A model generated the notes under the pieces. That model was not told the DNA's origin, searched no databases, and saw only the letters and a program-made list of their open reading frames with translations. Shown here in pieces: positions 9,038-56,152 of a DNA stretch of 64,000 nt. Made by a program: the position numbers and the translations under genes. Numbering within the stretch: the first letter of the stretch is position 1; each line of letters starts with the position of its first letter. Source of the DNA: Lepidodermella squamata (Eukaryota; Animalia; Gastrotricha). The DNA lies in the NCBI GenBank assembly GCA_047495785.1, contig JBLDXI010000046.1, positions 558,001 to 622,000 on the forward strand, written 5' to 3'.

Positions 9038-10786
9038 TTATCCGAAAATATTCAATTTTACGACATAAATAACAATCAAAGTGAGATAGAAGCTTAGGCT
9101 AAAGCAAAACATGGCAAGGTCAAGTGCCCGTAAAACATCAAGCGAGCAACGCCCGAAAAACAATACCAATCTGCCCTGTAACGCAGGATAATGCTTTTTC
9201 AAATTTGCTAGGAAATTAGCCAGAAAGAAGTACACAGAAATAATCGATGTGAGTACCGATTTCAGGAGTAGGTAGTCGATAACATGAATTCGCTGCGGGG
9301 TGTGAGGAGCACGCCGTCCTACTTCGTTCTGCGTTACGATGAAGGCTAGCAATACAGTCACAGCTATACTCGGTCTTTCATTTCTACGCGTTGGAATAAC
9401 AAATGAGGCGAGTACAATTACGATCAGCGTCTGACATGGGGCAACTATTGACAACATGTAGCCACGAGAATTTCTAATGAATTCTAGGCGGAATAGGGCG
9501 TAGCCCGACATTGAACCTTGAACTATGCTAGACTCAGCGAATCCCGGAATATTCACAGACGTAGCCAGTCGCCACTCAGAATCAACATCTGTAAGCGGCT
9601 CTAGCAAAACAACATTCGAAAATGTCACAAACGTTGCTGGCTCACGAATTATGAAGAAAAAATCGCACATTTGGCGATCAAACGGGAAAAGCTGTAAATC
9701 GATCGCGCATTTCGAGTTAAACACGTTGTACCTCGTCCAATAGAAGTATAGGGTCCTATTCGGTGAATGTGGGTAGTATTGAAGTTGGATATCACTGCCA
9801 GTTAGCAGTGCACTCTTTTGGATGTAAATATCGTCTGTGCTGTTCAACATGAGCATTTTCGGGTGCCAAACTAGTGAAGAATTTGTTACAAGGACCCGCT
9901 CAACCGGGCTAGCCGTTGGGGCGCAGAATTCCTTGGCGCAAACTGTTGATTTCCATTTCAGATGAGACACTCCTGATACTGAAATTGTCTGGTCTAAATC
10001 GTCTAAATCATTGATTGCGTCCATTTGAAACGTGAATGCTACTTTGGTTGGGAGTGATTCTTGGGCAGATCTAGACTTTGGTTGAATGTAGGGACAATGT
10101 AGAATATCGAGTAAGGAAACTGATGGAATAGCCGCACCTTGAACGAGATCAGGAAAGTTGTCATCATCATCATCATCATCATCATTCGGTTTCGTAGAAG
10201 AATTTTGAGAAGGAGCAAGGGTATTATTGAATGGCGGTAGGGTTACCTCGTGACTTGAAAGGTTCTCACTTTGAACATTGGATGCATTGGATTTGGTTTG
10301 GCTGGTTGTAGTAGGCTTGAATGTCGTAGTCAGAGGACTAGAAGTTGGACTGAATGTTGAAGTTAAGTTATCAGACTTCGTGAACATGTTACTAGGCATC
10401 CAAATATCATAAACAAGTAACTGGGTTGGAAAAACCGGGTAATTGTTGTACATCCTACTGACCATTCCCATCTGAACAGTCATGCCATCTTCCAAAAGTG
10501 AACCAAAGCCAGAGGCATTGAAGTTACTGAAACAGACAACAGGTTGATTGCTGTCATTTGGAGTTATGGTGATCAATAGCTGGTCCGACATCACTTGAAT
10601 TACTATCGTGACTCCAGATTGGAGTTGGCCTATTGAAATCGCACATTTTGGACAATGAACCTGGCAACACTGCGCTGTTAGATTGATGCTATCTGTCGGG
10701 AGAGGAGCGAAAACTGGAAATATATTCACAGAGCTCGTGTTTTTTATCGTTACAGCTACAACCAGAGCAGGTCTTTTTTCACCCAC
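9038..10786 (-). CDS. 3' exon of Cys-loop pentameric ligand-gated ion channel (cation-type M2) with N-terminal extension
   Basis: Cys-loop CAIDLQLFPFDRQMC, WHPKML, four TM helices, NERPSIAVTVLLAF at M2. The ORF has no initiating ATG or signal peptide and abuts the element end at 10802. Ser/Thr-rich linker and (GAT)n poly-Asp tract. Confidence 0.85.
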   Translation of the reverse strand: MGEKRPALVVAVTIKNTSSVNIFPVFAPLPTDSINLTAQCCQVHCPKCAISIGQLQSGVTIVIQVMSDQLLITITPNDSNQPVVCFSNFNASGFGSLLEDGMTVQMGMVSRMYNNYPVFPTQLLVYDIWMPSNMFTKSDNLTSTFSPTSSPLTTTFKPTTTSQTKSNASNVQSENLSSHEVTLPPFNNTLAPSQNSSTKPNDDDDDDDDNFPDLVQGAAIPSVSLLDILHCPYIQPKSRSAQESLPTKVAFTFQMDAINDLDDLDQTISVSGVSHLKWKSTVCAKEFCAPTASPVERVLVTNSSLVWHPKMLMLNSTDDIYIQKSALLTGSDIQLQYYPHSPNRTLYFYWTRYNVFNSKCAIDLQLFPFDRQMCDFFFIIREPATFVTFSNVVLLEPLTDVDSEWRLATSVNIPGFAESSIVQGSMSGYALFRLEFIRNSRGYMLSIVAPCQTLIVIVLASFVIPTRRNERPSIAVTVLLAFIVTQNEVGRRAPHTPQRIHVIDYLLLKSVLTSIISVYFFLANFLANLKKHYPALQGRLVLFFGRCSLDVLRALDLAMFCFSLSFYLTLIVIYVVKLNIFG

Positions 10787-28600: not shown

Positions 28601-29734
28601 TAACCCACCTCACGTTAGCCACTTGACGCCTCAGCACCAGCAAACGCGAGGCGACGCGAGACTACTTCAGCCGATAAACAATTCCAGTCGCCATAGAAAC
28701 GCGAAATTAAATTATTTTCTTTATGAAATTAATAATAACTTTCATTAATTAATTGATTTACAACAAATAAATTAGAAACAATTGATTTTGCCGCAGAATC
28801 CCGTTCCGCTTGGTTGAAAACGGCCACGCAAAGTTGGCGTCACTATGAGTGAATTGTCTTACGCCGCTGCGCTGCGCTTGCAGCGTGGCGTAATGGGCAG
28901 GTCCCCTTGTCTTGCGTTGTCTTGCGGAAAAAGGAGGTTTATGTTGATGTTTTATATAGAAAAGGTCTAGTAAGAGATGATTGACGTAGAAAAGATGCGT
29001 CAACGAGGCAAAGGCTGACTCTTGCGTAACCGGGAATCAGTTAGAAAATTTATTTTCGCATGCGGCTAATCTGGTTATTAAATAGACCAAATGATAGCAT
29101 ATTAATAAATAATAAAAACTATTTATACTAAATTTAATTTATACTAGTAGATAATCAAAAGTTTTCGCGCCGTATCTTTTTAAAAACATATATGTTCGTT
29201 TGTACCGATTTGTTTTTAGTGTATTCGCGTTGCGTTTTGCGTCCGTAGTTTTGTTCGACGTAAGACACCTTTGGTTCTGTCCTTGAGACGGTAGAGTACT
29301 AGAATATTAGTCTCAGGGTTTTGTCACTGAATGATATAGATATAGAAATGTGTGGAAACATCACCTCGAATGGTTTAAATGGATAATAATTAAAAAGGCC
29401 TTACTCCGTAAGGAGCCGTTAGGGCCTAACCTTTTAGATCTTGACCAGTTTTATCATCATTATCATCCTTTTTATCATTGTTCTTCTTACTGTGTGATGT
29501 CAAAAAGACAAATGTTGCGATTAAATGTGTTTATTAGGTTTTATGAAACGAGCAGCAGTAGTATGCAATCATATGTCAGAGGATCGGATGAAATGAAAAT
29601 CAAATGATGAGAAGTAAACTCAGATGATGATCAGAGAAGGAAAACAGTCAACAGGTGAGTGGATTCAGTCAAATCAGTGAAATGTCGTAAACTGTGTTGC
29701 ATTTCAGATTAGATGTGGCCCGCCGTGATGCAGA

Positions 29735-30439
29735 TCAGACAATCGGTGCGCGTTTAGCGTTGCCGTGGGGGCGATACTGGTCAGCTGGTTCATTGACCAC
29801 GACGATGGCATTACGTTCGCTAACGTTGATCTGGCGGTCCTGAGCGAAGTGGCCCATCACCCCTTTGAATTGAACGACGGTGCCCTCGATCGGCATGCTT
29901 CGTTCGCCGAAGGCCACAACCAGGATGACGCGGTTTCGGCCGGCGATATCGAAACGGTAACGGTTATCGCTCGGCGTCTTGGGGAAGACGTGAGTGATGA
30001 GCCCTTTGACGGCAACCTTCTCGTGGAGGTTGACGTGAGCCACGTCGTCAACAAGAGCGTATTCGTCAACGTGGGCAGCCGTGCATTCCGGGCTGTGTTC
30101 AATGTCGGTGACGTCAGCCCACAACTCGTATTTGTGGCCTGTCTCGCTGTAGCGAGATGCTGCCTGTACGAAGAGATGCAAGGAAAGATGAAACAGATTG
30201 TTTAACATAAAACAGTTAGTTACCGAAATGGTCGGTTCCTGAACTCGAATCGAGCAGCCGTTGAAGAGCGGGGGCAGTCCTGTGCCTTTGATAACGACAC
30301 GGATAGTTCCGGTTTGGTCGTTAAGTACGACAGCCATTTGCGAACCGTCGGCGATCTTCTGCGGGGCTCCCTGCACCACGCCTTGCAGGTAGAAGTTGTA
30401 GTCGCCTTGCCATAGTTCTGCAATTGATTGTCTCTCCAT
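29735..30439 (-). CDS. RPA/SSB-like tandem OB-fold protein of the Helitron; in-frame 60-nt intron 30223-30164
   Basis: OB-fold patterns VLNDQTGTIRVVI and KVAVKGLITHV...ILVVAFG. The AT-rich segment GTAACT...GTACAG is a canonical intron inside GC-richer coding sequence. Confidence 0.7.
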   Translation of the reverse strand: MERQSIAELWQGDYNFYLQGVVQGAPQKIADGSQMAVVLNDQTGTIRVVIKGTGLPPLFNGCSIRVQEPTISVTNCFMLNNLFHLSLHLFVQAASRYSETGHKYELWADVTDIEHSPECTAAHVDEYALVDDVAHVNLHEKVAVKGLITHVFPKTPSDNRYRFDIAGRNRVILVVAFGERSMPIEGTVVQFKGVMGHFAQDRQINVSERNAIVVVNEPADQYRPHGNAKRAPIV

Positions 30440-33400
30440 GGTGAGTTACGAGTTGAAAAACAAACGAAGACTTTAGTTTTGAAAAATCTATTTATCAGTT
30501 AGTCGCAGAGTGCACGAATGGTCCGTGTCTGACTGTTCTCACCCACGGCGGGTAATTAATTATCGATTGGCGGCGAGAAGAAACGGCTGACCCAGCGACC
30601 TGATCGCCTGGTCGCTGACGCTAGTAATATTAGTGGCCGGTAAGTCACAAAATTAAGGAGGCTCTCGATTGATTTATCTGCTAATTATATTTTTATTGAC
30701 TAGTAGTGACAACTGCTCTTCTGACCTCTCGCTAATGACGGGGTTGCTGGTTGCCTATAATGGCACTTTTCGTCGCTAATTACTGGCTTCGTTTTCGTCG
30801 AGTCTGGTTACGACGTCATTCCAGGTGTGTGTGCACGCGTCAATGGGGCGAAGCGAAATCGGCGTTGCGCAACGGCTTACAATAGGTGTGGTTTTTCGCC
30901 CAAGACTACGGCTCTTATCTGCAAGCTGATGATGTGATTGAAAAGAGAGGAGAGGAAATGAAAAAACACTATGTGTGTAATGTATAATACAACATATATA
31001 CTTCGCGACGCTGGTCAAGGAAATTTGTGGCTTGTCTGACTTTATCATCGTTGTAGTGATAAAATGTTGTTGTTCCAGTTTTTCGGGCGAATGTTGTATA
31101 ATGCCCACTAGTCACGTTTATTCCGTGGTGACATATAATTGCTGAGAGATCATAGTTTTTATTTGCTATCGTTATATGATCCGGATAAGTGACAGGCGAT
31201 AGATTTTTCTGGTCATTGATTAACGCCGGTTGTGATTTGCTTGAGCTCTCTTTGTCATGATCAATAACGTGTTGATATTGATCAAAACGGCTGAGATGTA
31301 AAACTACGTTGCTAGATGGTTCCTGAAACAAAATTTCCCGATTATGCATCTTGTTTTCTTTGCAATTGCTGCATTCCTTAACAATTGTAGTGTGACAATA
31401 TTCGTTTATTATTTCTTCTACTGTACACTGGCTGTTGTTTTCGGGTAGGAGCAAATTAACGAGTGACGTACGTTCGAGGCGCTCGGTTTGCGTGTTACAT
31501 ATAGTGCATGAATCGCGGTAACACAAGCTAATGCCAAAGTTATGAAGTAGATCCGGAGTTTCAAGTTCGACTACTTTTAAAAACACTTCTCGGCTATCTT
31601 GTTGTTCGAAATTTTGAAATATATTGGGATGCAGTACGCCCATTGCTGTTTTGAACCGCCCCGCATCCACATTGTCTAGTCGATTGTTTATTTGTTGTAG
31701 TATCGTGAAAAGACTGCTGAAAATATCTCTGACATGGGCGTCATGCTGTGTCTCATTCAACCACGTTAGATGTGCTTGGAGCCATTCTTTGAAACCAATG
31801 CAAACGTCAAATGCTTGCAAACTCGCATTAATATAACATGTGTTTCCGATATTGCGAATTCCTGAGTTGGACGTGTTTGCTGGCTGCATGTGTTTTTCTG
31901 CTGATGTGTGCACATAATTGTTTATACTCTGCGTAAAAGGTGTAGCGTTGCTGATGTTTTGTTTTGTTTGAGGTGCGCGTTTGATATTTTCTCTGTCGTT
32001 TTCACGTGTGTTCGCTGCTGTGATGTTGCTAACGTAATGTCGTATTTCCTCCTCATAGTTCCACGCATCACTATCACAATCATCGTCATCTTCATCGCTG
32101 TCGCTGGTAGTGTTGAACGTTTTCTTATTATTTATCATCTCAACGAAAGAAGTGAATTTGCGTCCGAAATTAGACACCCAATTCGAATTATTGTCCTGCT
32201 GTCTGTCAAAATACGACTGCAAAAGCAATTCTAATTGATTACTCAGCCCTATGAGACGCTCGTCCTCTTTAAGAGTGCTCGATTTTGGCGTGAAAAATGC
32301 GTAATCGTCGTCTGTTAATTTTTGTAGCAAAATAACACCTTTTCGTGTTCTTGCTCTTGACAGCGCTAAATATAAGCTATGCGCATCTACTTTCTTCATG
32401 CTGGACGGACGTGGGTCTGCTATTATAATATACTCAAGCGTGCTGCCTTGGATTGAGTGACACGTTGCACCATATGCAGGTTGTATGGGAAAGTTGTTTA
32501 TAGTATACTTTTTACCGTGTCGATTTAACTTCACTGACCGTGATTCTCTTTTTATCGGCATGACACTCGCGGGCCAAAATCGCGGTAAACCTGGAAATCT
32601 CAACGAATTATTGTTTCCTTCGATGTCTACGAATATATTTATTGGTGGTTTGCTAGGACGCCAAAATACGCCGTCCTGAGTGAACTCAGTGTCTTTTTCC
32701 CATTGAATATATTTTACTGTTCCGCTCGCGCCATTACATACACCTTTACTCACAGCTTGGTTTACTTTAATTTTTACTGGCATACCCTCAAACACATGTA
32801 AAATTGCTGGTATATTCCCTGTTTTATTTTCTGGAAGTTGGAAAATTGATAGCATGTCGGCGACTGAAGCTCCTCGTATAATCGCTGGTATTTTAAATAC
32901 GCGCTGATCTTGGTTTTCTGTTGCTATTTTCTGTAAAGCAGCCATATTAACCATGTGTCGTGTGTTATTATCAGGAGAGACAATAGGCGCATTTCCTACT
33001 AGTTCGTTGAGTTGCGACAAGTCTTGAATGACGCACCCGTCGAGGATGTCTTTTATTACTTGCGTCCATTTTCCTCGTCTACCATTTTTTAGCTCTTCTC
33101 CCCAGACTGGATCGTTTATATACCTGTGTTGTTCTGTTAGATATATAACGTTTTTTATTGACATATATTTTTCATACGCCATTTGTGTAAATTGATCGGC
33201 TTCTTTTGGTGGCTGAAAGAGGAATCGTGATTGAACTGGTTCGAGCTGAAACCAATCACCTAGTATCATTATCTGTATATCTGGCCATTTTTTTGTCTTT
33301 TTTGTTTCCTTTAATGCGTAAAGGGCTTCGATTGCTATTCCGAATGTTTTTTGGTTTTGCATGCTTACCTCGTCGAGTATTAGTCCGTGGATTCCGCGCC

Positions 33401-35121
33401 ATTTGTTAATTAACTCTTCGCTCGGCTGTTTCAGATGATTAGGAATGTCGTTTATCGGTGGTTTCAAAGAAAATGATGAATGTAATGTTTCGCCGCGTAT
33501 AATACTTGCACTGTTGCCTGTAGTTCCCTCATAGCTGACGCAATTAGCTAGGCCCCACATTTTGAAGAAGTGTTGAATTGCCGCATCCTCCTGAACCGAT
33601 AACTAGTAAAGGATCGCATTTCGTGAAAATCTCGGGTAAACACTCAATTTGAATATCAAAAGCTTTTATGAGAACACGGCCGGCGAATAAAATGAAAACA
33701 TAGTGCTGTTTCAAGTTGAGTTTGAAGTATGCGGAAACCTCAGCGAGTGTGGGGTATATTTTATTTCCTATCTCTTCTGTGTAATGTACACTTTCATGTC
33801 GGTTATATGTTATTGCTTCCGTTATGCGTTTCAGGATTATAGCCTGGGTTTGGGGCAACTCAATATTTTTGTATATTTGCCGTGTTTCTGTGCTTTCGCT
33901 CTCTGAAATCGTAGTCATAGCGTTTATTTTCGCCTTATCATTAACCTCCTTCAACTGTTCTCGAGTCACTGGCTTTTTTATTTGTATCTCGTCCGAACCA
34001 TATTCTGCTTCATGTCTTTGTCTGAGATTTGTTTTCAATGTAAAATTTACTAAACTGGAAATTGATTCGTCAATGATATCTGTGTGCATTGTCTCAGCCC
34101 TCTGTAAACAGTCCGACGATTTTTTATAGAAATTTATCAAATTTTCATCGTCAATTGAGATAATTTTATCGCCACTGCTGTAATTCTTGTTTATGATATA
34201 TTCGCTTTCAATGGCCATATCTTTTTCTCGGGCATCTTCTTCTTTTCTGAAATTTGCACTGTCTTCCTGGGCAAAGTAGAATTGTTGGTGATAATTAAGC
34301 TTGTTCTGAATTTCTCTCGATTTTTTCCAATTATTAAACGCCATTTTGGAACTGCCATTTTCGTCTAGAAATTCTGTTTTTGGATCTCGAAAAGCTTTAT
34401 ACAATAGTAGAGCACATCTGTAATATTTCTCGGCGTCACCTTCATGTTCATCTAATTTATCTCGGTTCGGAAATCTTGGGCCGACAATGCGTGGCACTAC
34501 AGTCTGCGCTCTTATGAGAATACGATGTGATTCGTATTGTGGATGATTGGGGTGAAATCTGTAGTGGCTCTTCATTTTTTTCGTAACTTTTTTGTAGGCC
34601 AGGACATACCAATACCAGGGCATGTTTTCTAGCTCTTTTGGTCGATATAAATAATCATATATGGCCGCGTTTCTTTCAAACATACCGTGTTTATTCTGTG
34701 TGATTATGCATGATAAATCTTTATCCTCAAGCATGTTTAAGCCTTGAGTTAAAAGCAAAGAGGCGAATTCATCGGAGAAATAACCACCTTTTCCTGTAAG
34801 TAAAAAGTGGGTAACAAGCGGCGATCCTATTTCCATAACGGAACTCTCATTCATTGACATGGCTATTAAGCGTTTAAGTCCTACTCGATGCACATCAATG
34901 TCGAGATTGTTTTCGTTTTTTATTCGTGTAGATAAGCCAAGAGTAGCTACGTAAGCTGCATCTTTAATATAGAACACCTTCGCAGAATATTTAGCAGCAT
35001 ATATAGCCCTTGATATTGCTGCGTTAGCTACGAGGCAAATATCGATGTTAAAGTCATAGATCAAACGTATCTCTGGGCAATAGTTATTTACCCATGCATT
35101 TCCTAAGGTTCGCCTGGTATA

Positions 35122-37489
35122 CAGGGTGTTTCAGAACTCGCGCACTATATGAATAGCATGCGGCAAATGCGCGCGCATTGTTATGCGCATACACTATTAT
35201 ACGCGTATACTATTTTACCTATAAATGTACCACACACTACTGTAGTCAGCGTATAAAATATGCGTAATACATAAATGTACAGCATACATAATAGCACTGC
35301 CGTAGTTATTTTCTGGTGGAAACCTTCGAGCCTCGATAAATTTGAGCCGAGTTTCATTGAATATCTTTTTTATTTCGAGGATGATGTCATGTTTTTCTGA
35401 AACATGCTGATTGATTGGACTCTGAAGCGAGAGGTTTCAAAACAATTTCTCAAATTCCGTGGCTGGATATTTCAGAAATTGATGATTTCTGAGAAAATTC
35501 TGATTTTACTTGATGTTGAATTTGTCGAAAAATCGCTGGTTAATTAGTCTCCTGCCTTGGCATCAAAATTTCTTTCACGTTGCATTAATTCAAGGCCCCG
35601 ACCGCACATGTTGATAAAAAATGACGATGATCTAAACCACTGGCGAATGTTATACATCAAGCGAAGACAGAAAATGAAGGTTTGCAGTTCATTACGTGGA
35701 CTTAATGTAGCAATCTGATTTCGTGGATAACTAATCGAAATTTCCTTGAAATTACAATCAAGAAATCAGGAGCAAAATGTTGAAGGATAAATATCGAACA
35801 ATTCATGGCTAGATTTTATACAATCTTCGAAAAAGCCAAGAAAAGGTGAGAAATTGGAATTTTCCAGCCTTCAGGCTCCAGCATCTCCAAAAATCCGTGG
35901 ATGCCAATTGTATATTTTCACATCACTAAACAGCCAGAGATGTGCTTAACAAGGCCAGTAAGTCGCGCAAAATTTCTATCCACGGGGTTCGCAAGGAGAC
36001 GCATGTCAAATGTGACAAAAATCGTCGTTGAGAGGCTGTTTTCGGCCGCGAACGGGTCATCTTTGGGACCCTCCCTCTTGAATACCCGTGGATGGATTTT
36101 TGATTTCTTGACATCGTTAGATAGCCTAAGATGAGCTCTACAAGGCTGGTTGGTCGCGCCGAAAGTCTATCCACGGACATCGCAAGGAGACGCATGTCAA
36201 ACGACGCGAAAACCGTCGTAGAGAGCCTTTTTCCGCTACAACCGGGTCAACTTTACAACCCTCCCTCTTGAATACCCGTGGATGGATTTTTGATTTCTTG
36301 ACATCGTTAGATAGCCTAAGATGAGCTCTACAAGGCTGGTTGGTCGCGCCGAAAGTCTATCCACGGACATCGCAAGGAGACGCATGTCAAACGACGCGAA
36401 AACCGTCGTAGAGAGCCTTTTTCCGCTACAACCGGGTCAACTTTACAACCCTCCCTCTTGAATACCCGTGGATGGATTTTTGATTTCTTGACATCGTTAG
36501 ATAGCCTAAGATGAGCTCTACAAGGCTGGTTGGTCGCGCCGAAAGTCTATCCACGGACATCGCAAGGAGACGCATGTCAAACGACGCGAAAACCGTCGTA
36601 GAGAGCCTTTTTCCGCCCTTAAACGGGTCATCTTTGGGACCCTCACTCTAAGAATTCCGTGGATGGATTTTCGATTTCTTGATATCGTTAGAAAGCCCAA
36701 GAGCTGGTCTACCAGGCTGGTTTGTCGCGCAAAAAGTCTATCCACAGGGTTCGTAAGGAATCGCATGTCAAATGTCACAAAAATCGTCGTAGTTGGGCCG
36801 TTTAAGGTAACGTCAATGTTGCTGCGTCCATTCTTATGCAAGTGGTAAACGACATTTTCCCGTGGAATCGACTAAGTTTTTGCTTTCAAATTTTAGCTCA
36901 CAGAAATTTTTAAACTCAATCAGAGTGTTGCAACATTACCTTTACTCACGACTTTTTTCACTTCCTCTCAATTTTTACTGCTCTTTTCAAGAGTGAATGA
37001 ACGTGAAATCAAATTCATGGAATAAAACAACAGCAACGGCGTAAAAATTACATTATCTGGAATAATTTTCATCATATCTGTTTTGCAAACTCGAAATTAT
37101 TCATAGCCGCATTAAGAACCTGTCCTGTTGGAGGTTTCTTCATTGAGAAATCGGCAAATTTCCAGATATTTTGCAAGAGCAAGTCTTATTTCCTAGCGAT
37201 ATTCCCATTACTGCAGCAGTGTTACGGTATATACGCGGTATATACGAGTTCGATTTGCGCATGTTATAATGCGCGCATACCGCTTGCACGCCATATGGGA
37301 CGTATAACGCCAACTACATAGCATATACGCATTACACGCATTACCGTTTGCGCTAGCCGCGCCTTATACTATGCAAAAATATAAACATATGTGCGCGGAA
37401 TGTATGCGCAGCGCGCGCACGTTTACTCTGGATACCAAGGCAACCATTTGCCGCAGGTTATTTTAGTGCGCAAGTTCTGAAACACCCTG
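35122..37489. mobile_element. Non-autonomous Tc1/mariner-type TIR element with TA target duplication
   Basis: TIR CAGGGTGTTTCAGAACT(C/T)GCGCACTA, with gapped similarity to about 46 bp. TA at 35120-21 and 37490-91. Removal restores the Rep reading frame. No transposase ORF seen. Confidence 0.9.
35881..36830. repeat. Five-copy 190-bp tandem repeat
   Basis: CTCCCTCTTGAATACCCGTGG recurs at 36071, 36261 and 36451 (period 190); diverged copies start near 35881 and 36641. Confidence 0.95.
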
Positions 37490-40400
37490 TATAGGTGCAA
37501 GGTGTTCTTGTCAACTCCAGTTTCTGTTACTAATTTTTGAGGGAATTTGAATCTACAAAGCGATCTCTTTTTACTTGCTTTTCTAGTAATTTTACCGCAC
37601 GTGAAAGTATGTGTATAGCCGTGGATCTGGTCTTTTCGCAAACTCTTGGTCAATTGAACATGCCGAACACGCTTGTTTATTGAGAAACCTCCAGGTAATA
37701 GTCGAATTTTATTTATATTTTCATCGCTGATTTCCATTATTTCCTCAGGCGTGAAATCCTGAGTTTTCATTTCTATTGCGGTATCAATAACTTCATCATT
37801 GGTATGGGATTTTTTGCAGTTTTTACACTGTGCTACTATCGGCGGCGGTGTTGTTTTCTGTAGAATATGTGAGTACATTCGGTCGACTTTTACCGGCTCC
37901 AAATAACCACCGCAGTTGTTAGCATTACACAAAATTGCGTTTTCTGCTGGTAAGTCCCAAAATACTGGTAATTCAGTTTTGATTAATTCGTTAAGAAATT
38001 TCAGATACGTGTTGCTGAAATCGACGTCATTCATTAGTTTGATGAATTCATCGCGGTCGCGAGGAAATCCTACAATCCAAGCTACGCCATGGCAATGGAT
38101 TCTCAGTCTAGCCTGCGATTCGGGCGCAAAATACAAACTTTCCACGTGGCCCAATAACCCAGGTTTTTTCTTTGGTTGTTTCTTTTTTAGATCAAATGCA
38201 AATAATATTTCCATTATACAGGTTATACAAAGCCAATAATATCGAGCTTGAAGTACAGGATTGTTACTGACTATGCGAATCATTTCCGAAGGTGAAGGCA
38301 TCATCCAGCTAGCTAAAGCACTGCTTTCGTCGGGCAATATTTCTCTCTGGCAGTTTGCTCCGTTCCAAAATGAAACTAACAACGAAGAATCTGGTTTCGG
38401 CGTGAACGTAAAGAAAAGGGACGGTATGCCGCGGTAAATGATTATCGAGTCAAGGTTTCGCTGAAAATCAGTACGCTCTTCGTTGCTGCCGAGTCGCGCA
38501 GAAACACTGGCTGATATGGTATTTAATATGTCTCTTTCTTCGTTGTCTGTGAGAATTTGTTCATTGAAATATCTTCGCTTTTTATTAAGAGAATCAGTTT
38601 GAACTGCGGTATATATATCAGCGCCTGTTAGCTTCGCTACATTTGGTATAACATGCGGCTTTATTTTAGTTTTAACTTTGAGCTGCCTTATAATGCTCTC
38701 TTTGCTTATGTAGTCGTACAGTACTAACTTGAAAGTGGGATGCGTAGCAAAAGTTTCGGTAGATAACATGAGGTAATGTTTAGCTAATTCAAAGAGAGTG
38801 TAATGATGAGCACGCCCTTCTTTCAAACCTCCGCACCCGTATTGAAATAAACATGGAAACACTTTCTCGAAAAACAAATCGTCAGTAGCTTTTAATATTG
38901 TTGTTGATCTGTGTGCAACAAACGTATTTCCCTCAGGTGTTCCGTTGAGAAGTAAATTAACGGCTTTCTGCGTCAATTTATCATTCTTATGTTTCGCGTC
39001 TATAATTACAACTTCCGTCTCCGAGAATGCATTCGACTGAGATATGTTATCATCTTCTGTCGTGTCTGCCACAGATTTTCGTATTTTTCTGGCGTTATTT
39101 ATAAGTTCTCGGGTTGTATCATCCTCAGGAAGCCGAAAAATAACATCATTGATGTCTCCCAAGGGACCATTATTTTTTGGAAAGTGTTCAAATAAAGGAT
39201 TAATACGAATGCATTCTTCGTGTAATTGTCTCACAATTTTAGGGTCAAATTGCAGTTTCGTAGCCATGAGTAATTCCTGATCGCTCGTTATGGGGCCAGC
39301 CATTATAACTTTAGCGACGCCATCTTTTAGAGATTGCGGAAGACTAGATGCAATAGTAGCTTCGTAATTATCCCAACAAATCAAATTGCTGCTGAGTGTA
39401 TTACCAACTCCGCCGAAAACTACACGTATATTGCCGGATACACGAGCCAGTGAAATGCACTGAGTTGCTATATAACCTGCATCTGAAAACATTCTGTTGT
39501 TTCCCAGCACAAAATGGTCGGCAATCGCAAATTTAGGAACCTCAAATGATTGCTTCGTACCCTTTGACAATTTTTTCTCTACTTCGTTCAGGTAAATCAA
39601 TATATCAGTGGTAATCCAACAAAAGTAGGCTTTCTCAGCTTCGTCAAAGTAAAACGACCTCGGTGATAGCAAAAGGCGATTTAATCTGGAATTAAATTTA
39701 TTACAGTCGTATGACTCAAACATGGGCTCGGTAGTCCACGGTTTATTTCCACAAAAATACGCAAGCGCTTGGAATGGAAGATTATCACACCTGACTGACG
39801 TACATTCAAACATTGGAGTATAGAGATCAGTAACAAGGCATATTTTATGATCATATCGCTTCTGCAAAAATTCCAGTGCATCAGAAACAAGTTTTTCGCG
39901 GTAGTCGTCACTAGCAACAAAGATTTCATGGGATTCATTCAAAATGGTTATTTCGTCATGAGTCAGTAAAGAATCTGTTTTGGCATCAAAGGAGTCATTT
40001 AAGGAGTCAATGATATTAGTTGATTTAGTTTTCTTGATCTTGTTATATCGGTCTCTGTGCTGGCGAGCATCACTTTCAAGCCGTCGCTGATGTTCTACAT
40101 CAGTTTCGGTTGATCGACGCGTTGCTGCGTCGAATCTTGCCTTATCCAGGCGCTGACGTTTTCGGGCGACATCTTCAGCAGCACGCTGAGCCGACATACT
40201 CTCGCGTTTCTTCAACAAGTGACCGGCTCGACTAGCGTTGTCTTCAGTCGCCTTCCTCTTGGCATAGGACGACTTTTTTCGTTCGAGGCGCGCGCTTCGG
40301 TTTGTAAAGTCGACAGTCTGGTTCACAACAATGGAATCATCGGTAACCAGGCGCGGCCCGTTCGCTGCATCGTCATCGGCTGATGTTTCAGCATTCATGC

Positions 40401-40986
40401 CCTCGTTTCAGTTGTCGTGAGGAATACGATGATAATTTTATCAAAATAAAATATATGAATTTTTCTAAAACGATACGATACGGTTAGTCCAAATATGCAG
40501 TAAAAATGCATAGCGTAAGACAATACTATGATATACGACACTATGATAAAAGATATAATTTTAATGGAAACTAGCAGAAACTTCTTACTTCAATACTTCA
40601 ATACTTTGTCTATCCAAGTTAGGTAAAAACATCACACGATTCTTACTTCCTTACAGCGGTTTGCATACAGCGGTGAGCAAGCTGCAACATTTGTTGGGCC
40701 AAAGGATAACATTCGCTTCACACGTCCGCTTGTCGCTGGGGCGCAGCAGCCATACTGCACAGTACTAAAATACCCGGGACCTTGAAAACTCTTGGCGTGT
40801 TTCTTGGATTAGAAAATAAAAAGACTTATTTGAAATCTATAAATCTGCAGAAACTTAAAGTAAACAGAGAATTGTTGCCGCAGTCGCCCACCACAAACAG
40901 AGAAAAACGGGGGGTCGGCTTCCGCCTAACAGCAGTCCCCCTCCGGGGACCTGCCCAAATCCATGAAACTCATGTTCTCTCCTTAC

Positions 40987-44976: not shown

Positions 44977-47900
44977 ATGGAAGCTGCTGAACTCCAAGCT
45001 CAGTTGGCCAATCTGCAAGGTCAAAATGTTATGATCAACCATCGACTCGACGCCTTTACCGATCAATTTGCTCAGCTCTGTACAGCCGTCAATGCTCTTC
45101 GAAGTTCTGCTGCGTCGAATCCTGTATCTCAAGTTGCACCAGTTCCACCAGTGACGAGCCAACCAAATGCCCTGAGAGCTAAAATTCCAAGTCGGTATGC
45201 AGGCGATCGGTCTCAGTTTCGTTCTTTCGTAACTCAGTGCCAGATTTATTTGCGTCTGAATGGGGCCTATTTCCAGGACGATTCAGCAAAAGTCGCATTC
45301 ATTTGCACGCTACTTGATGGCACAGCTCGCGATTGGGTCACACCTTATGCCGAGTCAAACAGTAGTGTCATGGGTGATTTCCAGGCCTTTCTGACTGCTT
45401 TCAAAGCAGCTTTCGATGACCCGAACCGTACGAGAACCGCCGAGTTGACGCTTCAGCGGCTCAAACAAGGAAATCGTTCGGTTGCCGTATATGCTGCCGA
45501 ATTTCAGCGTCTGGCACACGATGTAACGTGGAATGACTCCGCGCTCACGCATCAATTCCGCTTCGGCCTTTCGGAAGAGATCAAGGACGAACTTGCTCGG
45601 GCGGAGTATCCTTCCAACTTACAAGATCTGATTAACCTTACGAATCGGATTGACGCTAGGCTCACGGAGCGAAAGCTGGAGAGAAGACATCAATCCGTTT
45701 ACCGAGGCTCTCCGTTGTATTTTCCTGCGACTACTGCTCAAGCTTCTAGTTCGTCAGCAGCTCCACAACCGCAAAACGAACCCGAACCTATGCAAGTTGA
45801 CGTGGTTCGAAAGCCGTTGACTCAGGCCGAACGCGAGTACCGCCGTCGAAATGGTCTTTGCTTGTATTGTGGTCAGCAAGGTCATGTGATCCGCAGTTGC
45901 CCTTCTCGACCTGCTACAACCCGTGCACGAAAAATAAACAATATACAGCATGATTTGTGCAATACCGATGATGAAATAAAAAATGGTGAATTGTACTCGC
46001 GTCCATCTCCTTTTCTATTGAGGTCTGCTATCAAGTCCCCGAGTGACGATCTCGCTTTCATCGCGATAGCTATGGTCGACTGTGGTGCGGATGGTAACTT
46101 CATGGATATAAAGTTCGCCAAAGATCACGATATCCCGTTCATTGAAAAGACGAAACCGACCCCCGTCAGTGGCGTTGATGGCAAATCGCTCAAGTCTGGG
46201 CCAATAACCCACAAAACTGCTAATCTCCAGTTCGAAGTCTACGGCCACACTGAGACTATTGCTTTTGAGCTCATCGACAGCCCTCACTACCCCGTCATTC
46301 TCGGAATGCCGTGGCTTAAGCTTCATGACCCATCCATCCAGTGGTCCAGTGAATCAATCGTGTTCAACTCGCCACTGTGTAAGAAGCATCACAACACGGA
46401 ATTTCAAAGTCACTTCATAGCCGAAATCAGCAAAACAACAGATATTGAAGATCCTCTGCACTCCCTACCTTCAAAGTACCGCGACTTCGCAGATGTATTC
46501 AGCGAAAGGGAGGCCGACAAGTTACCTCCCCACCGACCCTACGACTGCCCGATTGATCTTGAACCCGGAGAAACGCCGCCCTTTGGTCCGATCTACAGCC
46601 TTTCAGAAGTTGAGCTTGAAGCATTGAAGAAATACATTGGGGAGAACCTCGAAAAAGGGTTTATCCGTCCATCGAAGTCCTCCGCGGGATCACCGATCCT
46701 TTTTGTGAAGAAAAAAGATGGTTCTCTACGCCTATGTGTTGACTATCGCGGCCTTAACAAGATTACGAAGAAGAATCGATATCCACTTCCGTTAATTCCT
46801 GAACTACTTGATCGGCTTCGTCAAGCGAAGATTTTTACCAAGTTGGATCTCCGGGGTGCCTACAATTTGCTCCGAATTCGCGCTGGTGATGAGTGGAAAA
46901 CAGCGTTCCGGACAAGGTATGGCCTATTTGAATATCTGGTAATGCCCTTCGGATTGTCCAACGCCCCGGCGGCATTTCAACACTTCATGAACGACATCTT
47001 CCGTGACATGCTGGATGTTTGCGTCGTTATCTACCTCGACGACATACTCATCTTCAGCGATGATCCTAGCAAACACGATGAGAACGTTAGAGAAGTCCTC
47101 CGTCGCCTAAGGAAGTATCGCCTGTTTTCCAAATTGTCAAAATGCGAATTCGACGTCAGCAGAGTAGAATTCCTCGGCTTCGTAATAACTACGGATGGTG
47201 TCGCTATGGACGAGAAAAAGGTGGCCTGTATCCGCGATTGGAAACGACCAACATCCGTCAAAGACATTCAGTGCTTCATGGGTTTCGCAAACTTTTATCG
47301 ACGATTCGTCGCGAACTTTGCTAAAATCGCCCACCCGATCAATCGCCTTCTAAAGAAGGACGCACCATTCCACTGGGACGATAGCGCCGAAAAAGCCTTC
47401 ATCACGCTCAAGGAAAAGTTCACCTCGGCTCCTGTTTTGGTACACCCGAATCCAGATTTGCCATTCGTTGTCGAAACGGATTGCTCGAATTTTGCCCTTG
47501 GTAGCATCCTATCTCAAGTTCATACCGATGGTCGTTTACATCCATGCGCTTATTATTCTCGAAGTCTGACCGACACCGAACGAAACTACGATATTCACGA
47601 TAAGGAGCTGCTAGCTGTCAAAGTGGCTTTCGAGGAATGGCGACACTATCTCGAAGGTGCCCGTCACAAAATTACGGTCTATTGCGATCACAAGAACCTG
47701 GAATACTTCATGAGCCAGAGAAAAATCCTCAGCCAACGTCAGGCCCGCTGGGCGAACTTCTTCTCTCGATTCGACTTCCTACTCACGTACCGGCCTGGCA
47801 GCAAAGGAGGTAAACCTGATGCTTTATCCAGAAGATCCGAGTATCGCGGAACCGCCGGAAACGACGACTACGAAGCCTCATCCGTACTTACACCTGCTAA

Positions 47901-49392
47901 TTTCCAGGTAATGGCGCTCAAATCATTCTCTTGGTCAAGCCAATTTTCCGAGGACATCAAAGACGCCTTAGTTTCCGACCAGTTTGCTCAGTCTGTTTTC
48001 GAGTCTTTGAGAAGTAGGAAACAGGAGCCAAAGTTCGAGCAGTTTTCCGAGCAAAACGGCCTGTTACTTTTCAAGAACTTGATCTACGTACCTGAAAATC
48101 TGCGGCTCAGGGTTCTACAACTCCGCCATGACGCGAAGATTGCAGGACATTTTGGCTTCCGCAAGACTATGGAACTCGTCTCAAGAGATTATTGGTGGCC
48201 AAAGCAACGACAGTTCGTTCATGATTTTGTCAAGACCTGCGATACTTGCAAACGAGCAAAGGCCCCACGCCACTTACCTTATGGGAATCTGGAACCCTTA
48301 CCGACTCCAGATCGAGCATGGTCTTCTATCTCCATGGACTTCATCACTGAACTACCTCTGTCCAATGGGAACACAGTTATCCTGAACATTGTCGACCGCC
48401 TCACAAAGATGGCGCATTTTATTGCACTTCCAAAGTTACCGACCGCCGAAGAAACAGCAGCAGTGTTCCTCAGAGAAATTGTCCGGTTACATGGCGTACC
48501 TGACTCAACCGTCACAGATCGAGGCTCACAATTCGCGTCGAAATTCTGGAAAAGATTTTTCGAATTGTTGGGTACTGATGTGAAACTTTCCACTGCAAAT
48601 CACCCCGAAACAGACGGTCAGACGGAGCGTGTCAATCAAGTTCTAGAACAATATCTCCGTTGTTTCACGTGTTATCAGCAAGATGATTGGGCTGATCTGC
48701 TGCCCGTTGCCGAATTTTGCTACAACAACTCGTTGCACGCGTCAACCAACTGCTCTCCTTTTATGGCTAATTACGGTTTCCAGCCTAAGTTCGATCCGTC
48801 AACTCCGAGCTCAAGTGAAGTCCCTCGTGCTGAACTCCGGGTTAAGGACCTCTCCGAGCTGAAGGAGACTCTTGTGAAGGTACTTGACGCTGCAAAAGAA
48901 GCGTACAAAAAATATGCCGATCTAAAGCGACAGCCAGGTCCTGTTTTCGCCAAAGAAGATCTTGTTTGGCTGTCTGCGAAGCACGTCTCCACAAATCGAC
49001 CCAGCAAAAAGCTTGATTACAAGCGACTTGGTCCTTTCAAAATTATTGAGAAGATCAGCGATTCTGTTTACCGACTTCAGCTACCTTCGACCCTGAAAAT
49101 CCATCCAGTGTTTCATGTTTCTCTTCTCGAGCCTTACACTGAAAATCCTATCCCTGGTCGAGTTCAACCGCCTCCGCCACCAATCCAATCCGAGGAAGGG
49201 GAGGAATTTGAAGTTGAAGCTATTCTCGACTCGAAGTTGGAACGAGGTATCTTGAAATATCTCGTTGATTGGAAAGGCTATGGCCCTATAACGGAGTTGG
49301 GAACCAGTTTCAAACCTAAATTGCCCAGATCTACATGCCGAGTTTCATGCCAAGTACCCCGACAAGCCGAAAAATCAAGCTGCGACGTCTAG
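44977..49392 (+). CDS. Single Gag-Pol polyprotein (Gag, CCHC, PR, RT, RNase H, IN, chromodomain)
   Basis: CLYCGQQGHVIRSC, AMVDCGA, YLDD, ETDCSNFALG, GHFG/CDTC, DRGSQF, GQTERVN, LGPFKI, FEVEAILD..YLVDWKGY. Confidence 0.97.
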   Translation: MEAAELQAQLANLQGQNVMINHRLDAFTDQFAQLCTAVNALRSSAASNPVSQVAPVPPVTSQPNALRAKIPSRYAGDRSQFRSFVTQCQIYLRLNGAYFQDDSAKVAFICTLLDGTARDWVTPYAESNSSVMGDFQAFLTAFKAAFDDPNRTRTAELTLQRLKQGNRSVAVYAAEFQRLAHDVTWNDSALTHQFRFGLSEEIKDELARAEYPSNLQDLINLTNRIDARLTERKLERRHQSVYRGSPLYFPATTAQASSSSAAPQPQNEPEPMQVDVVRKPLTQAEREYRRRNGLCLYCGQQGHVIRSCPSRPATTRARKINNIQHDLCNTDDEIKNGELYSRPSPFLLRSAIKSPSDDLAFIAIAMVDCGADGNFMDIKFAKDHDIPFIEKTKPTPVSGVDGKSLKSGPITHKTANLQFEVYGHTETIAFELIDSPHYPVILGMPWLKLHDPSIQWSSESIVFNSPLCKKHHNTEFQSHFIAEISKTTDIEDPLHSLPSKYRDFADVFSEREADKLPPHRPYDCPIDLEPGETPPFGPIYSLSEVELEALKKYIGENLEKGFIRPSKSSAGSPILFVKKKDGSLRLCVDYRGLNKITKKNRYPLPLIPELLDRLRQAKIFTKLDLRGAYNLLRIRAGDEWKTAFRTRYGLFEYLVMPFGLSNAPAAFQHFMNDIFRDMLDVCVVIYLDDILIFSDDPSKHDENVREVLRRLRKYRLFSKLSKCEFDVSRVEFLGFVITTDGVAMDEKKVACIRDWKRPTSVKDIQCFMGFANFYRRFVANFAKIAHPINRLLKKDAPFHWDDSAEKAFITLKEKFTSAPVLVHPNPDLPFVVETDCSNFALGSILSQVHTDGRLHPCAYYSRSLTDTERNYDIHDKELLAVKVAFEEWRHYLEGARHKITVYCDHKNLEYFMSQRKILSQRQARWANFFSRFDFLLTYRPGSKGGKPDALSRRSEYRGTAGNDDYEASSVLTPANFQVMALKSFSWSSQFSEDIKDALVSDQFAQSVFESLRSRKQEPKFEQFSEQNGLLLFKNLIYVPENLRLRVLQLRHDAKIAGHFGFRKTMELVSRDYWWPKQRQFVHDFVKTCDTCKRAKAPRHLPYGNLEPLPTPDRAWSSISMDFITELPLSNGNTVILNIVDRLTKMAHFIALPKLPTAEETAAVFLREIVRLHGVPDSTVTDRGSQFASKFWKRFFELLGTDVKLSTANHPETDGQTERVNQVLEQYLRCFTCYQQDDWADLLPVAEFCYNNSLHASTNCSPFMANYGFQPKFDPSTPSSSEVPRAELRVKDLSELKETLVKVLDAAKEAYKKYADLKRQPGPVFAKEDLVWLSAKHVSTNRPSKKLDYKRLGPFKIIEKISDSVYRLQLPSTLKIHPVFHVSLLEPYTENPIPGRVQPPPPPIQSEEGEEFEVEAILDSKLERGILKYLVDWKGYGPITELGTSFKPKLPRSTCRVSCQVPRQAEKSSCDV

Positions 49393-53800: not shown

Positions 53801-56152
53801 ATGATTTCATCTATCCACATTCTCCTTTTCGTGCCTTTTCTCGCCGGCGTGAATGGTTTTAAACCTCGAAAGCTCGATTACTTAGTTTTTGTCACATTCA
53901 CTGGAAATGAACCGAGGGATGGCCAGGTCTGTAGAGCAGCGAGTCAAGTAGCTTTCAACGAAGCCAATTCTCGAAGCAATATTCTAACGAATTACGAACT
54001 TGTCCCACATTTCAAAGACGAAGGGATGAGTTCTTTGAATGTAGTAACGAACACTCTGCTGTTTCAACGCTTAGCCGAACAAAGGAATAGAACGATCTCG
54101 CCAATATTCGCAGGCCCTAACTTCTCGAATGGCTGTATAACCCTAGCAAGGACCCTGCACCACATAGACATGGCGCATGTTGCGACGGGTTGTACGGCTA
54201 TCCCGCTGTCGGGTATGAGAGATTTGTACCCGAATCTATACCACGGTCGTATGACGTCAGACGCCTTGGTCTACTCCCGGCTTCATTTCGTCAAGAAAAT
54301 TGGTGGCTGGGATAAAGCTGCGATCCTTTCAAGCGCGATGAGTTTCCGCGATGTCACTGCTTCAATCTTGATGGATCAAATATTGGCTCAACACAATGTT
54401 TCTGTCCCTTGGTTCGATTCAAGCCTAGACTTCGATGATTCTATTATCACGTCTCTGCTAAAAAGCGATTTGCGAGTCATTCTCCTCGAATTCACAGTGA
54501 TTGATCCATTACTAAAATTCTTTTGCGCCTCATATCGCAACGGAATGACAGGGGCTCGGTATGTCTTTGTCCCACATCCTAATGCCCTCTTCGACCCAAC
54601 CCGGAAACTTCCCATACTACCACCTGGCTGCGATAGGTCGGTGATCATAGAACAAATGAAGTATACAATGTGGGTCGGAACCTTACTCATGTCGACTACA
54701 AACAATGGCCCAACCTCGTTTGGTTATGACAATATCGAATTCGGGAGAAGGTTGAATCAGCTGGTTGATTCGAGTGTTCTCGCTGATTATACATTGGGAG
54801 ATTTGTGCCATGACGTCACTTTACAGGGGATTTTAGCTCTAAACGCTTCTATACCTGAACTGTCAAAACGAAATTTGACCCTTGAGGATTATTCTACAAA
54901 TTCGACGGAAATTATGAGAATTCTAAGGAAAAACTTAGATGATAGTGACTTTTACGGGCTGAGGTTCGGTCGGCAGAAATATTCAGCTAGAATCGAACCA
55001 GACAACGAGCCTCAGGCTGTCTATCAATGGTTGCCCGATCAGGGTTTTATTCTTGTTGCTAGAATCGACCATGATATCAATCGAATGTGGAACGACTCAG
55101 ATAGTTATACAGTGGAAATAACGGCCAATATTACTTGGAGGCAATGGCCGCCGAAATCCCACCCAGAAATTCAGGTTGAAAACTTGACCCAGCCTATTTC
55201 CTACATAAGATTTGTCGAAATCGCTGCCTCGGTACTAACCATCCTGCCCTTCTGCGCCAAGTTACGAAAAGATTCATTGGACTTGGATAGAGTGACTACA
55301 GCATCGATTTTCACCGGTTGTATCCTACTGAATCTATTGGCGATTCTCTTCGCAGAAATGAACGCAATCGCTGTTCTATACGGCGACTACTGCCTGCTAA
55401 GGAGCGCTGTTGCAATGATAGGCTTATGTCTGCTAAACGGAGGGTTGTTGGTCCGAATGTCCCACCATTACCTCGAAGCTGTGTCCCGGCCATTACCAGC
55501 CGGCCCACGAATGATGCGTTGTCCTTCTCCGAAGCTGCGTTCAACTCGGTCTCTAAAATATGCTAAGAGCCTACCATTATCAAGGATTGCCTCATCAAGA
55601 CCCGCCGACAAGCCTGGATTCAGCAAATTCCACACGTGGGTTGGGTTCATATCATTCATCGCTGCAATTACCATTTTGACGATTATATGGCTGAGTTTGG
55701 ATGGTCAGAAACTGCGATTTCTATCAACAGGGCCGATTTACGATTCTGTATCCGACCGGTATGTCAACTTCATCAATCTTTCATGCCGATCTCGTCACGA
55801 TGTCATATGGATTTCAATCGCTACAACTCTCCATTTGCTAGTTAGCTGCTTTTGCGTACTGACAGCCTTTCGTAGCAGAGACAGGCTTAAAGCAGGAATC
55901 GCTCAAGAGCTAAAGATGACACTGGGCTGTAAAATCAATTCCGACGCCCTATTAATAGTTGGATTGTCGCTCGTTTTCATCATGTCAGAAAATCCTGTTG
56001 GACAGAACATTTTATGCAGCTTCCTATCTCTCGCTGTTTCTGCAAATTCAATCTTATTCGTGAAGTTCGCGAAAGCCTCAACATACAAACCATCAAGCTT
56101 TGATCAGGGGAAAAGCGCATCTCCTTTAGTACTAACAACATTTCATCCGTAG
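53801..56152 (+). CDS. Intronless class C GPCR-like receptor (GABA-B-like), divergent copy 3
   Basis: 783-aa ORF: signal peptide, ANSRSNILTNYEL, YPNLY, GWDKAAIL, seven TM segments. Confidence 0.85.
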   Translation: MISSIHILLFVPFLAGVNGFKPRKLDYLVFVTFTGNEPRDGQVCRAASQVAFNEANSRSNILTNYELVPHFKDEGMSSLNVVTNTLLFQRLAEQRNRTISPIFAGPNFSNGCITLARTLHHIDMAHVATGCTAIPLSGMRDLYPNLYHGRMTSDALVYSRLHFVKKIGGWDKAAILSSAMSFRDVTASILMDQILAQHNVSVPWFDSSLDFDDSIITSLLKSDLRVILLEFTVIDPLLKFFCASYRNGMTGARYVFVPHPNALFDPTRKLPILPPGCDRSVIIEQMKYTMWVGTLLMSTTNNGPTSFGYDNIEFGRRLNQLVDSSVLADYTLGDLCHDVTLQGILALNASIPELSKRNLTLEDYSTNSTEIMRILRKNLDDSDFYGLRFGRQKYSARIEPDNEPQAVYQWLPDQGFILVARIDHDINRMWNDSDSYTVEITANITWRQWPPKSHPEIQVENLTQPISYIRFVEIAASVLTILPFCAKLRKDSLDLDRVTTASIFTGCILLNLLAILFAEMNAIAVLYGDYCLLRSAVAMIGLCLLNGGLLVRMSHHYLEAVSRPLPAGPRMMRCPSPKLRSTRSLKYAKSLPLSRIASSRPADKPGFSKFHTWVGFISFIAAITILTIIWLSLDGQKLRFLSTGPIYDSVSDRYVNFINLSCRSRHDVIWISIATTLHLLVSCFCVLTAFRSRDRLKAGIAQELKMTLGCKINSDALLIVGLSLVFIMSENPVGQNILCSFLSLAVSANSILFVKFAKASTYKPSSFDQGKSASPLVLTTFHP

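Follow-up and report, generated by a model that had tools for sequence, protein, structure and literature searches.

Helitron-like elements carry a variety of protein domains in addition to the Rep-helicase (RepHel) transposase. The HELIANO survey (Li et al., Nucleic Acids Res 2024; PMC11417382) lists UCH, the Pfam domain of ubiquitin-specific proteases (USPs, peptidase family C19), among 20 domains that are stably included in these elements. UCH was found there almost only in the HLE2 group, with enrichment in subgroups c and d, mostly in lungfish and axolotl; all but four named domains, and so UCH too, were placed in open reading frames (ORFs) separate from RepHel, and the extra domains were read as capture events (PMC11417382). 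Deubiquitinases of other classes have been described as well. In zebrafish Helentrons, tegument-like VTD domains were shown to have deubiquitinase and deneddylase activity (Erven et al., Nat Commun 2022; PMC9741609), with cleavage of ubiquitin and NEDD8 as well as K48 and K63 chains (PMC9741609), and OTU domains have been noted in Helitrons, with a proposed role in the protection of transposition proteins (PMC9741609). Here we describe a transposon copy that we assign to the Helitron2 type of HLE2 and that belongs to a family with a USP domain fused in frame to the C-terminus of RepHel. The copy lies in a 64,000-nt stretch of the Lepidodermella squamata assembly GCA_047495785.1 (contig JBLDXI010000046.1, positions 558,001 to 622,000), hereinafter the window, the coordinates of which carry the prefix w.

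The USP-HLE2 association as such is already known, having been catalogued in 2024, and in the literature searched, no paper beyond HELIANO links Helitrons with USP domains. The original prediction for this locus had called a C19/USP fusion unfamiliar and had named common occurrence of the architecture in curated Helitron families as evidence against its reading; the listing of UCH in HLE2 (PMC11417382) goes part of the way to that, and novelty is not supported.

A USP domain in frame with the Rep-helicase transposase

The complete protein is encoded outside the window, by a paralogue on contig C9 of the eukaryotic assembly to which the window belongs (121 Mb in 151 contigs). A single intact ORF of 2,385 aa (L022:1331-8488, minus strand) contains the Pfam domains Helitron_like_N (residues 570-801), PIF1 (1499-1701), UvrD_C_2 (1888-1932) and UCH (2090-2381), so that the order along the protein is a charged N-terminus, a DUF6570-like region, the HUH Rep, the Pif1-type helicase, an acidic linker and the USP. 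In the window, the homologous sequence is distributed among three ORFs on the minus strand. Helitron_like_N (PF14214) is in the 991-aa ORF (residues 541-772, E 1e-15), and the 506-aa ORF includes the two-tyrosine (YxxxY) motif, which reads IYAAKYSAK in the translation. The 863-aa ORF, w33560-30969, encompasses the C-terminal part of the helicase (PIF1, PF05970, E 1.1e-8; UvrD_C_2, E 3.7e-6), the acidic linker and a full USP; its UCH match (PF00443) spans residues 567-859 and profile positions 2-254 of 254, with E 2.7e-28. Across the proteins searched, the PIF1 scores range from E 1e-8 to 5e-11.

Several claims of the original prediction can be judged from this layout. That one ORF leads from the helicase by way of an acidic linker to a complete USP is borne out, with all the quoted motifs present in the translation, and so is the lack of an AP endonuclease: in the Pfam search, none of the ORFs in the window, C15 and C9 copies has an Exo_endo_phos match. 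The protein of about 2300 aa that had been envisaged exists naturally as the C9 ORF. Rep, helicase and USP form one protein in the family, as the C9 ORF demonstrates, but not in the window copy: the span 30969-40398 is not a single ORF in the window, being broken by an insertion and a frameshift, and only the C-terminal part of the helicase and the USP share a frame there.

The C9 copy is one of four places in the genome with homology to the helicase-USP protein, the others being the window itself (C46), C15 and C4. At the nucleotide level, the C15 copy is 99.5% identical to the window copy, and C4, which is internally deleted, is about 96% identical; C9 shows 76-84% nucleotide identity and 68% amino acid identity to the window helicase-USP. 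Beyond this genome, a whole-length word search with the C9 protein identified P0001 (2,340 aa, encoded on a metagenome contig in ENA), which is 36% identical to the C9 protein across 97% of the latter and consists of DUF6570, Helitron_like_N, PIF1 and a C-terminal UCH. Profile searches added P0006, a 722-aa helicase-USP fragment that is colinear with the C-terminus, and P0090, a protein of 2,598 aa with about 26% identity and the same domain order as in C9. There is no stop codon or frame change between the helicase and the USP in the window, C15, C9, P0001, P0006 or P0090.

A word search with the USP region alone, among proteins of 1,312-4,174 aa, gave no matches; this blank reflects a limit of sensitivity and not absence, because the whole-length search then found P0001. 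The USP profile search yielded 20,268 matches, with multi-USP or generic USP proteins dominating the top, and P0090 was the only Helitron among the 33 long top matches; the USP is too divergent for this list to measure the frequency of the fusion. On the P0001 contig (L024), which may be truncated, the OB gene and the inverted repeats (see below) were looked for and none were found.

Selection on the USP domain

Comparison of the window and C9 families by the Nei-Gojobori method gave ratios of nonsynonymous to synonymous substitution rates (dN/dS) of 0.04 for Rep, 0.07 for the helicase and 0.17 for the USP; these values are approximate, dS between the families being near saturation (1.2-2.0). 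The middle part of RepHel is 76% identical to C9 residues 1018-1572, with dN/dS of 0.085, and the helicase is 80% identical to that of C9 at the amino acid level. The linker, at 50% identity and with saturated dS, looks unconstrained. Within the family, between the window and C4, the USP dN/dS is 0.84, which is consistent with neutral decay after insertion. Judging from these comparisons, the USP is under purifying selection and is not a decaying one-off capture: its dN/dS between the two families is 0.17, remote relatives share the architecture, and no close host USP is present.

Motifs, fold and origin of the USP

The USP translation contains the motifs GNTCYINASLQ, QQD, CTIC and CSNC, SGHY and YNDD. 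In alignments with PDB sequences, GNTCY, QQD and GHY...YNDD align with the Cys, QQD and His boxes of human USP15 and USP2, and the predicted catalytic residues are Cys575 (w31836-31838), His820 (w31101-31103) and Asn837-Asp838. An alignment of four sequences, with identity down to 24%, shows no variation at the catalytic Cys, His and Asn-Asp, in the QQD box or in the first CxxC. An AlphaFold2 model built from a 39-row alignment (pLDDT 89.7, pTM 0.88) has USP1, USP46, USP2, USP12, USP30 and USP21 as its top Foldseek matches in the PDB (TM 0.76-0.81, E about 1e-25), and the domain is accordingly predicted to adopt the thumb-palm-fingers fold of USPs.

Ordinary USPs are numerous in the genome, for example, USP32-like and USP9X-like proteins. 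The best match of the Helitron domain among them has an E value of only about 1e-3 and is confined to the His box; recent capture of a host USP was rejected on these grounds. The domain was placed among USPs in a 40-row tree. A topology in which the five Helitron-borne USPs are constrained to a single clade is not rejected and fits better than the free quick search (log-likelihood +25, p-AU 0.82), but the deep nodes of this tree are weak and long branches meet, so that the tree lends weak support to a single origin of these domains.

In the same genome, a second HLE2 family (L031:2509-5499; G000:C23:305509-308499) has a USP at the N-terminus of the transposase, with the ORF order UCH (residues 93-293), DUF6570 (529-658) and Helitron_like_N (from 834). 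Comparison of this USP with that of the window family detected no closeness. Within a single genome, HLE2 transposases thus have USPs at either end, N-terminal in the C23 family and C-terminal in the window family.

Termini, mobility and classification of the element

Alignments with the C15 and C4 copies delimit the whole element in the window (Table 1). The terminus TGGGCAGGTCCCC is common to the window, C15 and C9 copies, with differing flanks, and the 13-nt inverted repeats and the stem-loop are kept in the C15, C4 and C9 copies. The DNA fold of the stem-loop has an energy of -15.3 kcal/mol (z -2.7), with none of 200 shuffled sequences as good. In canonical HLE2 elements, which insert between T and T, the terminal inverted repeats are 12-16 nt long and the right one is followed by a stem-loop; DUF6570 (PF20209) upstream of Rep is a proposed HLE2 marker (PMC11417382). 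In P0001 (residues 317-437) and P0090 (298-414), DUF6570 is above threshold and aligns with C9 residues of about 317-437, and the DUF6570-like stretch in the N-terminal part of the window RepHel is colinear with the DUF6570 region of P0001. Taken together, the sequence features identify the element as HLE2 in the Helitron2 state that lacks the AP endonuclease; the absence of this enzyme is ordinary because the Helitron2 state of HLE2 has none.

Two other classes were considered and rejected. A canonical Helitron (HLE1) would have a 5' TC, a 3' hairpin followed by CTRR, A/T insertion and no inverted repeats, whereas the termini here are TGGGCAGG... and ...AAGACAATT and inverted repeats are present. 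A Helentron, that is, an HLE2 with a C-terminal AP endonuclease, does not fit either: there is no Exo_endo_phos and the C-terminus is the USP.

The presence of copies on four contigs with unrelated flanks is a sign of mobility, and transposition appears to have been recent because two of the copies (window and C15) are 99.5% identical. About 30 further matches to each terminus are scattered genome-wide, including short non-autonomous elements whose paired ends are separated by 2-3 kb. Five places have a 5' and a 3' terminus within 2-3.5 kb of each other, with 88-100% end identity: G000:C13:4283512-4285790, C50:390666-394063, C21:278384-281095, C13:2546419-2549181 and C42:3398826-3401989; these are probable non-autonomous derivatives of the window Helitron family.

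Lesions of the window copy and its sister copies

The window copy carries two lesions. A 2,368-bp insertion, which is not in the C15, C9 or C4 copies, interrupts the Rep region. Directly behind helicase motif I (Walker A), the loss of 20 bp shifts the frame, so that the second and third ORFs are out of phase; C15 and C9 have GSGGCGKS at this site and continue in frame. The C15 copy is free of both lesions. It contains an insertion of 2.66 kb in the untranslated stretch that separates the 5' terminus from the start of the ORF (L016/L019; approximately G000:C15:1380650-1383310), which the window copy lacks.

The inserted element, flanked by a TA duplication, is Tc1/mariner-like and holds tandem repeats of 190 bp (4.3 copies; array at 35975-36792). 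An inverted-repeat end of the CAGGGTGTTTCAGAAC type also adjoins the 3' end of the C4 Helitron copy, and because of this recurrence, the family of the nested element is probably abundant and recently active.

The accessory gene

Downstream of RepHel-USP, the window copy has an accessory gene, which occupies the same position in the C15, C4 and C9 copies, with 56-58% amino acid identity. The original prediction had called it an OB-fold gene; a conserved accessory gene indeed follows the USP, but the OB fold rests on sub-threshold evidence. Comparison with the C9 copy reveals two exons, separated by a GT..AG intron of 60 nt (w30223-30164) that in the window is in frame and stop-free, so that the unspliced ORF reads as a single protein of 234 aa; in C9, the intron is 55 nt long and has a different sequence (L022 583-637). 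Such short in-frame, stop-free introns are a trap for ORF-based annotation.

The accessory searches used the unspliced ORF and exon 2. PF01336 scores below threshold, with E 0.0045 for the C15 copy and 0.048 for the window, and the look-alikes of the protein in the language-model Atlas are OB/RPA/SSB clusters (0.92-0.93). The phmmer search of the PDB, the profile searches and the word search were blank, and a single-sequence AlphaFold2 model reached a pLDDT of 31.6. The product is possibly an OB-fold protein that binds single-stranded DNA.

Table 1 Features of the Helitron2-type element in the window
Feature	Window coordinates	Strand	Basis or detail
Whole HLE2 (Helitron2-type) copy, about 12.1 kb including the nested 2.37-kb insertion	28852..40957	-	C15 and C4 alignments end exactly here; flanks unrelated
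5' terminal inverted repeat TGGGCAGGTCCCC (element strand), flank T before	40945..40957	-	
Rep-helicase-USP ORFs	w40398-37423; w35064-33544; w33560-30969	-	991 aa; 506 aa; 863 aa
RepHel N-terminal part: charged N-terminus, DUF6570-like region, Rep/HUH nuclease	37423..40398	-	HCH motif in RIHCHGVAWI
Nested non-autonomous element, 2,368 bp	35122..37489	.	CAGGGTGTTTCAGAAC inverted ends and TA target duplication, read at junctions
RepHel middle part: two-tyrosine motif, spacer, helicase start to truncated Walker A (GSGGCGN...)	33544..35064	-	translation
20-bp deletion relative to the C15 copy, near w33581	33575..33590	-	20-nt gap, blastn of window vs C15
Pif1-type helicase, motifs after Walker A to motif VI	32241..33560	-	PIF1 and UvrD_C_2
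Acidic low-complexity linker, helicase to USP	31863..32240	-	translation, includes SDSDEDDDDCDSD
USP (peptidase C19, Pfam UCH) domain	30984..31862	-	full-length profile match
Accessory gene, downstream of RepHel-USP	29735..30439	-	exons w30439-30224 and w30163-29735
Right inverted repeat GGGGACCTGCCCA, exact reverse complement of the 5' terminus	28894..28906	-	read from sequence, 46 nt from 3' end
3' stem-loop (ACGCCACGCTGC AAGC GCAGCG..GGCGT), then terminal AAGACAATT	28852..28891	-	

Genomic surroundings

About 4 kb from the Helitron, the window contains an uninterrupted 1,471-aa gag-pol ORF of the Ty3/gypsy type (44977-49392, plus strand; capsid, reverse transcriptase, RNase H, integrase and SH3_Tf2-1). 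Three long, apparently intron-poor ORFs at 6617-8824 (plus), 53801-56152 (plus) and 9038-10786 (minus) encode class C G protein-coupled receptor-like proteins (ANF_receptor and 7tm_3) and the ligand-binding domain of a Cys-loop channel, and an ankyrin protein is among the neighboring ORFs. The receptor and channel neighbors confirm an animal host, and nothing points to human DNA.

Comparison with described elements

The window family resembles the UCH-bearing HLE2 elements of HELIANO (PMC11417382) in having a RepHel with a DUF6570-like region, short inverted repeats together with a 3' stem-loop, a T next to each end, no endonuclease and a downstream UCH. It differs from them in that the UCH is in frame with RepHel instead of being encoded in a separate ORF, and, whereas the hosts recorded there are mostly lungfish and axolotl, the family described here comes from a small invertebrate genome, with two metagenomic relatives. 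The HELIANO paper does not include a sequence-level or selection analysis of the USP (PMC11417382). With the Helentrons that encode VTD or OTU domains (PMC9741609), the family shares membership of the HLE2 group and a rolling-circle transposase polyprotein with a built-in cysteine deubiquitinase; in Helentrons, however, the deubiquitinase is of the VTD or OTU class and located upstream, whereas here it is a USP/C19 enzyme located C-terminally, after the helicase. The place of the USP is where Helentrons carry the AP endonuclease, which is missing here. Helitron2 elements (Fusarium FoHeli and the Repbase Helitron2 families; PMC11417382, PMC5148889) are similar in the termini, the RepHel core and the lack of an endonuclease; the described Helitron2 transposases end after the helicase, and the window family adds about 450 aa of linker and USP. 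Cellular USPs (USP1, USP2, USP12/46, USP15, USP30) have the same fold (TM about 0.8), the Cys, QQD and His boxes, and the zinc-ribbon CxxC, but are only about 20% identical, with no orthology to any one USP; the Helitron domain is a minimal USP of about 300 aa, without accessory UBL, DUSP or ZnF-UBP domains.

No new kind of system is revealed by this locus. What is added is the location of the USP, in frame with RepHel and at the place of the Helentron endonuclease, along with purifying selection, an intact catalytic apparatus and occurrence in a small invertebrate genome. The in-frame USP refines the 2024 catalogue entry that places UCH in separate ORFs.

Alternative explanations and the likely role of the USP

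We consider it likely that the window contains a recently inserted and now defective copy of an autonomous-type HLE2 element, the family of which encodes a RepHel-USP protein of about 2,385 aa with a USP that would be active in cis. Within this interpretation, what is shown is the domain architecture, the HLE2-type ends, the USP fold, the two lesions, and the conservation of both the USP and its catalytic residues. A number of observations weigh against it. The window copy cannot make the RepHel-USP protein, owing to the nested insertion and the frameshift, and its closest sister, C15, has a defect of its own, a 46-bp deletion (w38255-38300 in window terms). The assignment of the protein to HLE2 relies on colinearity with P0001 and on the termini; DUF6570 (PF20209) is not detected directly, a Pfam search relaxed to E 10 having given no match to it in the proteins of the window and C9 copies. 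In all three copies compared (window, C15 and C9), each junction has a T, and these residues could be the element's own. The second CxxC pair of the USP is not kept in P0001, the statement of HELIANO that UCH occurs in separate ORFs is at odds with the single ORFs found here, and the near saturation of dS noted above also belongs on this side.

Gene capture is a well-known habit of Helitron-like elements and the way in which HELIANO explains the extra domains (PMC11417382), so the USP could be a fragment of a host gene that was captured once and rides as a passenger without a role in the element. The neutral decay suggested by the within-family dN/dS of 0.84 would agree with such a fate. Nevertheless, this explanation is largely refuted already and appears very improbable: the in-frame position of the USP is kept in proteins from other sources that are 36% and about 26% identical, the between-family dN/dS is 0.17 with invariant catalytic residues, the best host USP matches only in the His box at about 1e-3, and a single clade of the five Helitron-borne USPs is not rejected (p-AU 0.82). 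Somewhat less remote, but still unlikely, is a pseudo-enzyme or scaffold, in which the USP fold would have been kept for binding ubiquitin or a ubiquitin-like protein, for example, on ubiquitylated PCNA, FANCD2 or chromatin, with no hydrolysis. The top structural matches do include USP1, USP12 and USP46, which act on chromatin and repair substrates, although the differences in ranking are trivial; the invariance of the Cys, the His, the Asn/Asp and the QQD oxyanion box down to 24% identity would be unexpected under selection for binding only.

The intact 2,385-aa ORF in C9 and the low copy number, with four USP-bearing copies, could also indicate that the long Rep-helicase-USP ORF was co-opted as a host gene and is no longer a transposon gene. 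There is little to recommend such domestication, given that the C9 copy keeps both termini, the inverted repeats and the stem-loop, that the copies are at unrelated sites, two of them being 99.5% identical, that non-autonomous derivatives share the termini, and that copies have been disrupted without constraint. An equally slim chance attaches to the production of two separate proteins, with the USP made or released apart from RepHel through self-cleavage, splicing or an internal start of translation. The features of the linker, which is long and acidic and shows no constraint, would suit this case, and HELIANO classes UCH with the domains in separate ORFs (PMC11417382). However, the absence of any stop or frame change between the helicase and the USP in the six sequences examined for it argues for co-translation, because one frame is kept across an unconstrained linker in such diverged lineages.

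Under the preferred interpretation, a RepHel-USP polyprotein of an autonomous-type HLE2, the USP would be an isopeptidase of ubiquitin or a ubiquitin-like protein (NEDD8, ISG15 or similar) that is delivered in cis with the transposase. During rolling-circle transposition, the transposase is covalently linked to DNA through tyrosine, and the USP might strip ubiquitin from it; host replication and repair factors could be alternative or additional targets. Removal of ubiquitin would shield the targets from proteasomal degradation or from DNA-protein-crosslink removal. By analogy, this role would parallel that of the Helentron VTD domains, which are active, and of the OTU deubiquitinase domains. 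The ideas of the original prediction, stabilization of Rep and countering of adduct repair among them, fall within this group of hypotheses, and at the level of sequence they are indistinguishable.

The naturally intact C9 paralogue provides a source of a compact USP of about 300 aa (L022:1331-2245, minus strand) for biochemistry. Along with the OTU and tegument-like deubiquitinases of Helentrons, the USP strengthens the case that this group of transposons needs to counter host ubiquitylation. A more far-reaching and rather doubtful possibility is that the presence of three unrelated deubiquitinase folds (OTU, VTD and USP) in HLE2, with the USP N-terminal in one family of this genome and C-terminal in another, reflects a general need of HLE2 transposition for deubiquitination, with the USP shielding the Rep-tyrosyl-DNA adduct from crosslink repair. 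If so, the family would become a tractable model for the cellular sensing of HUH-DNA adducts.

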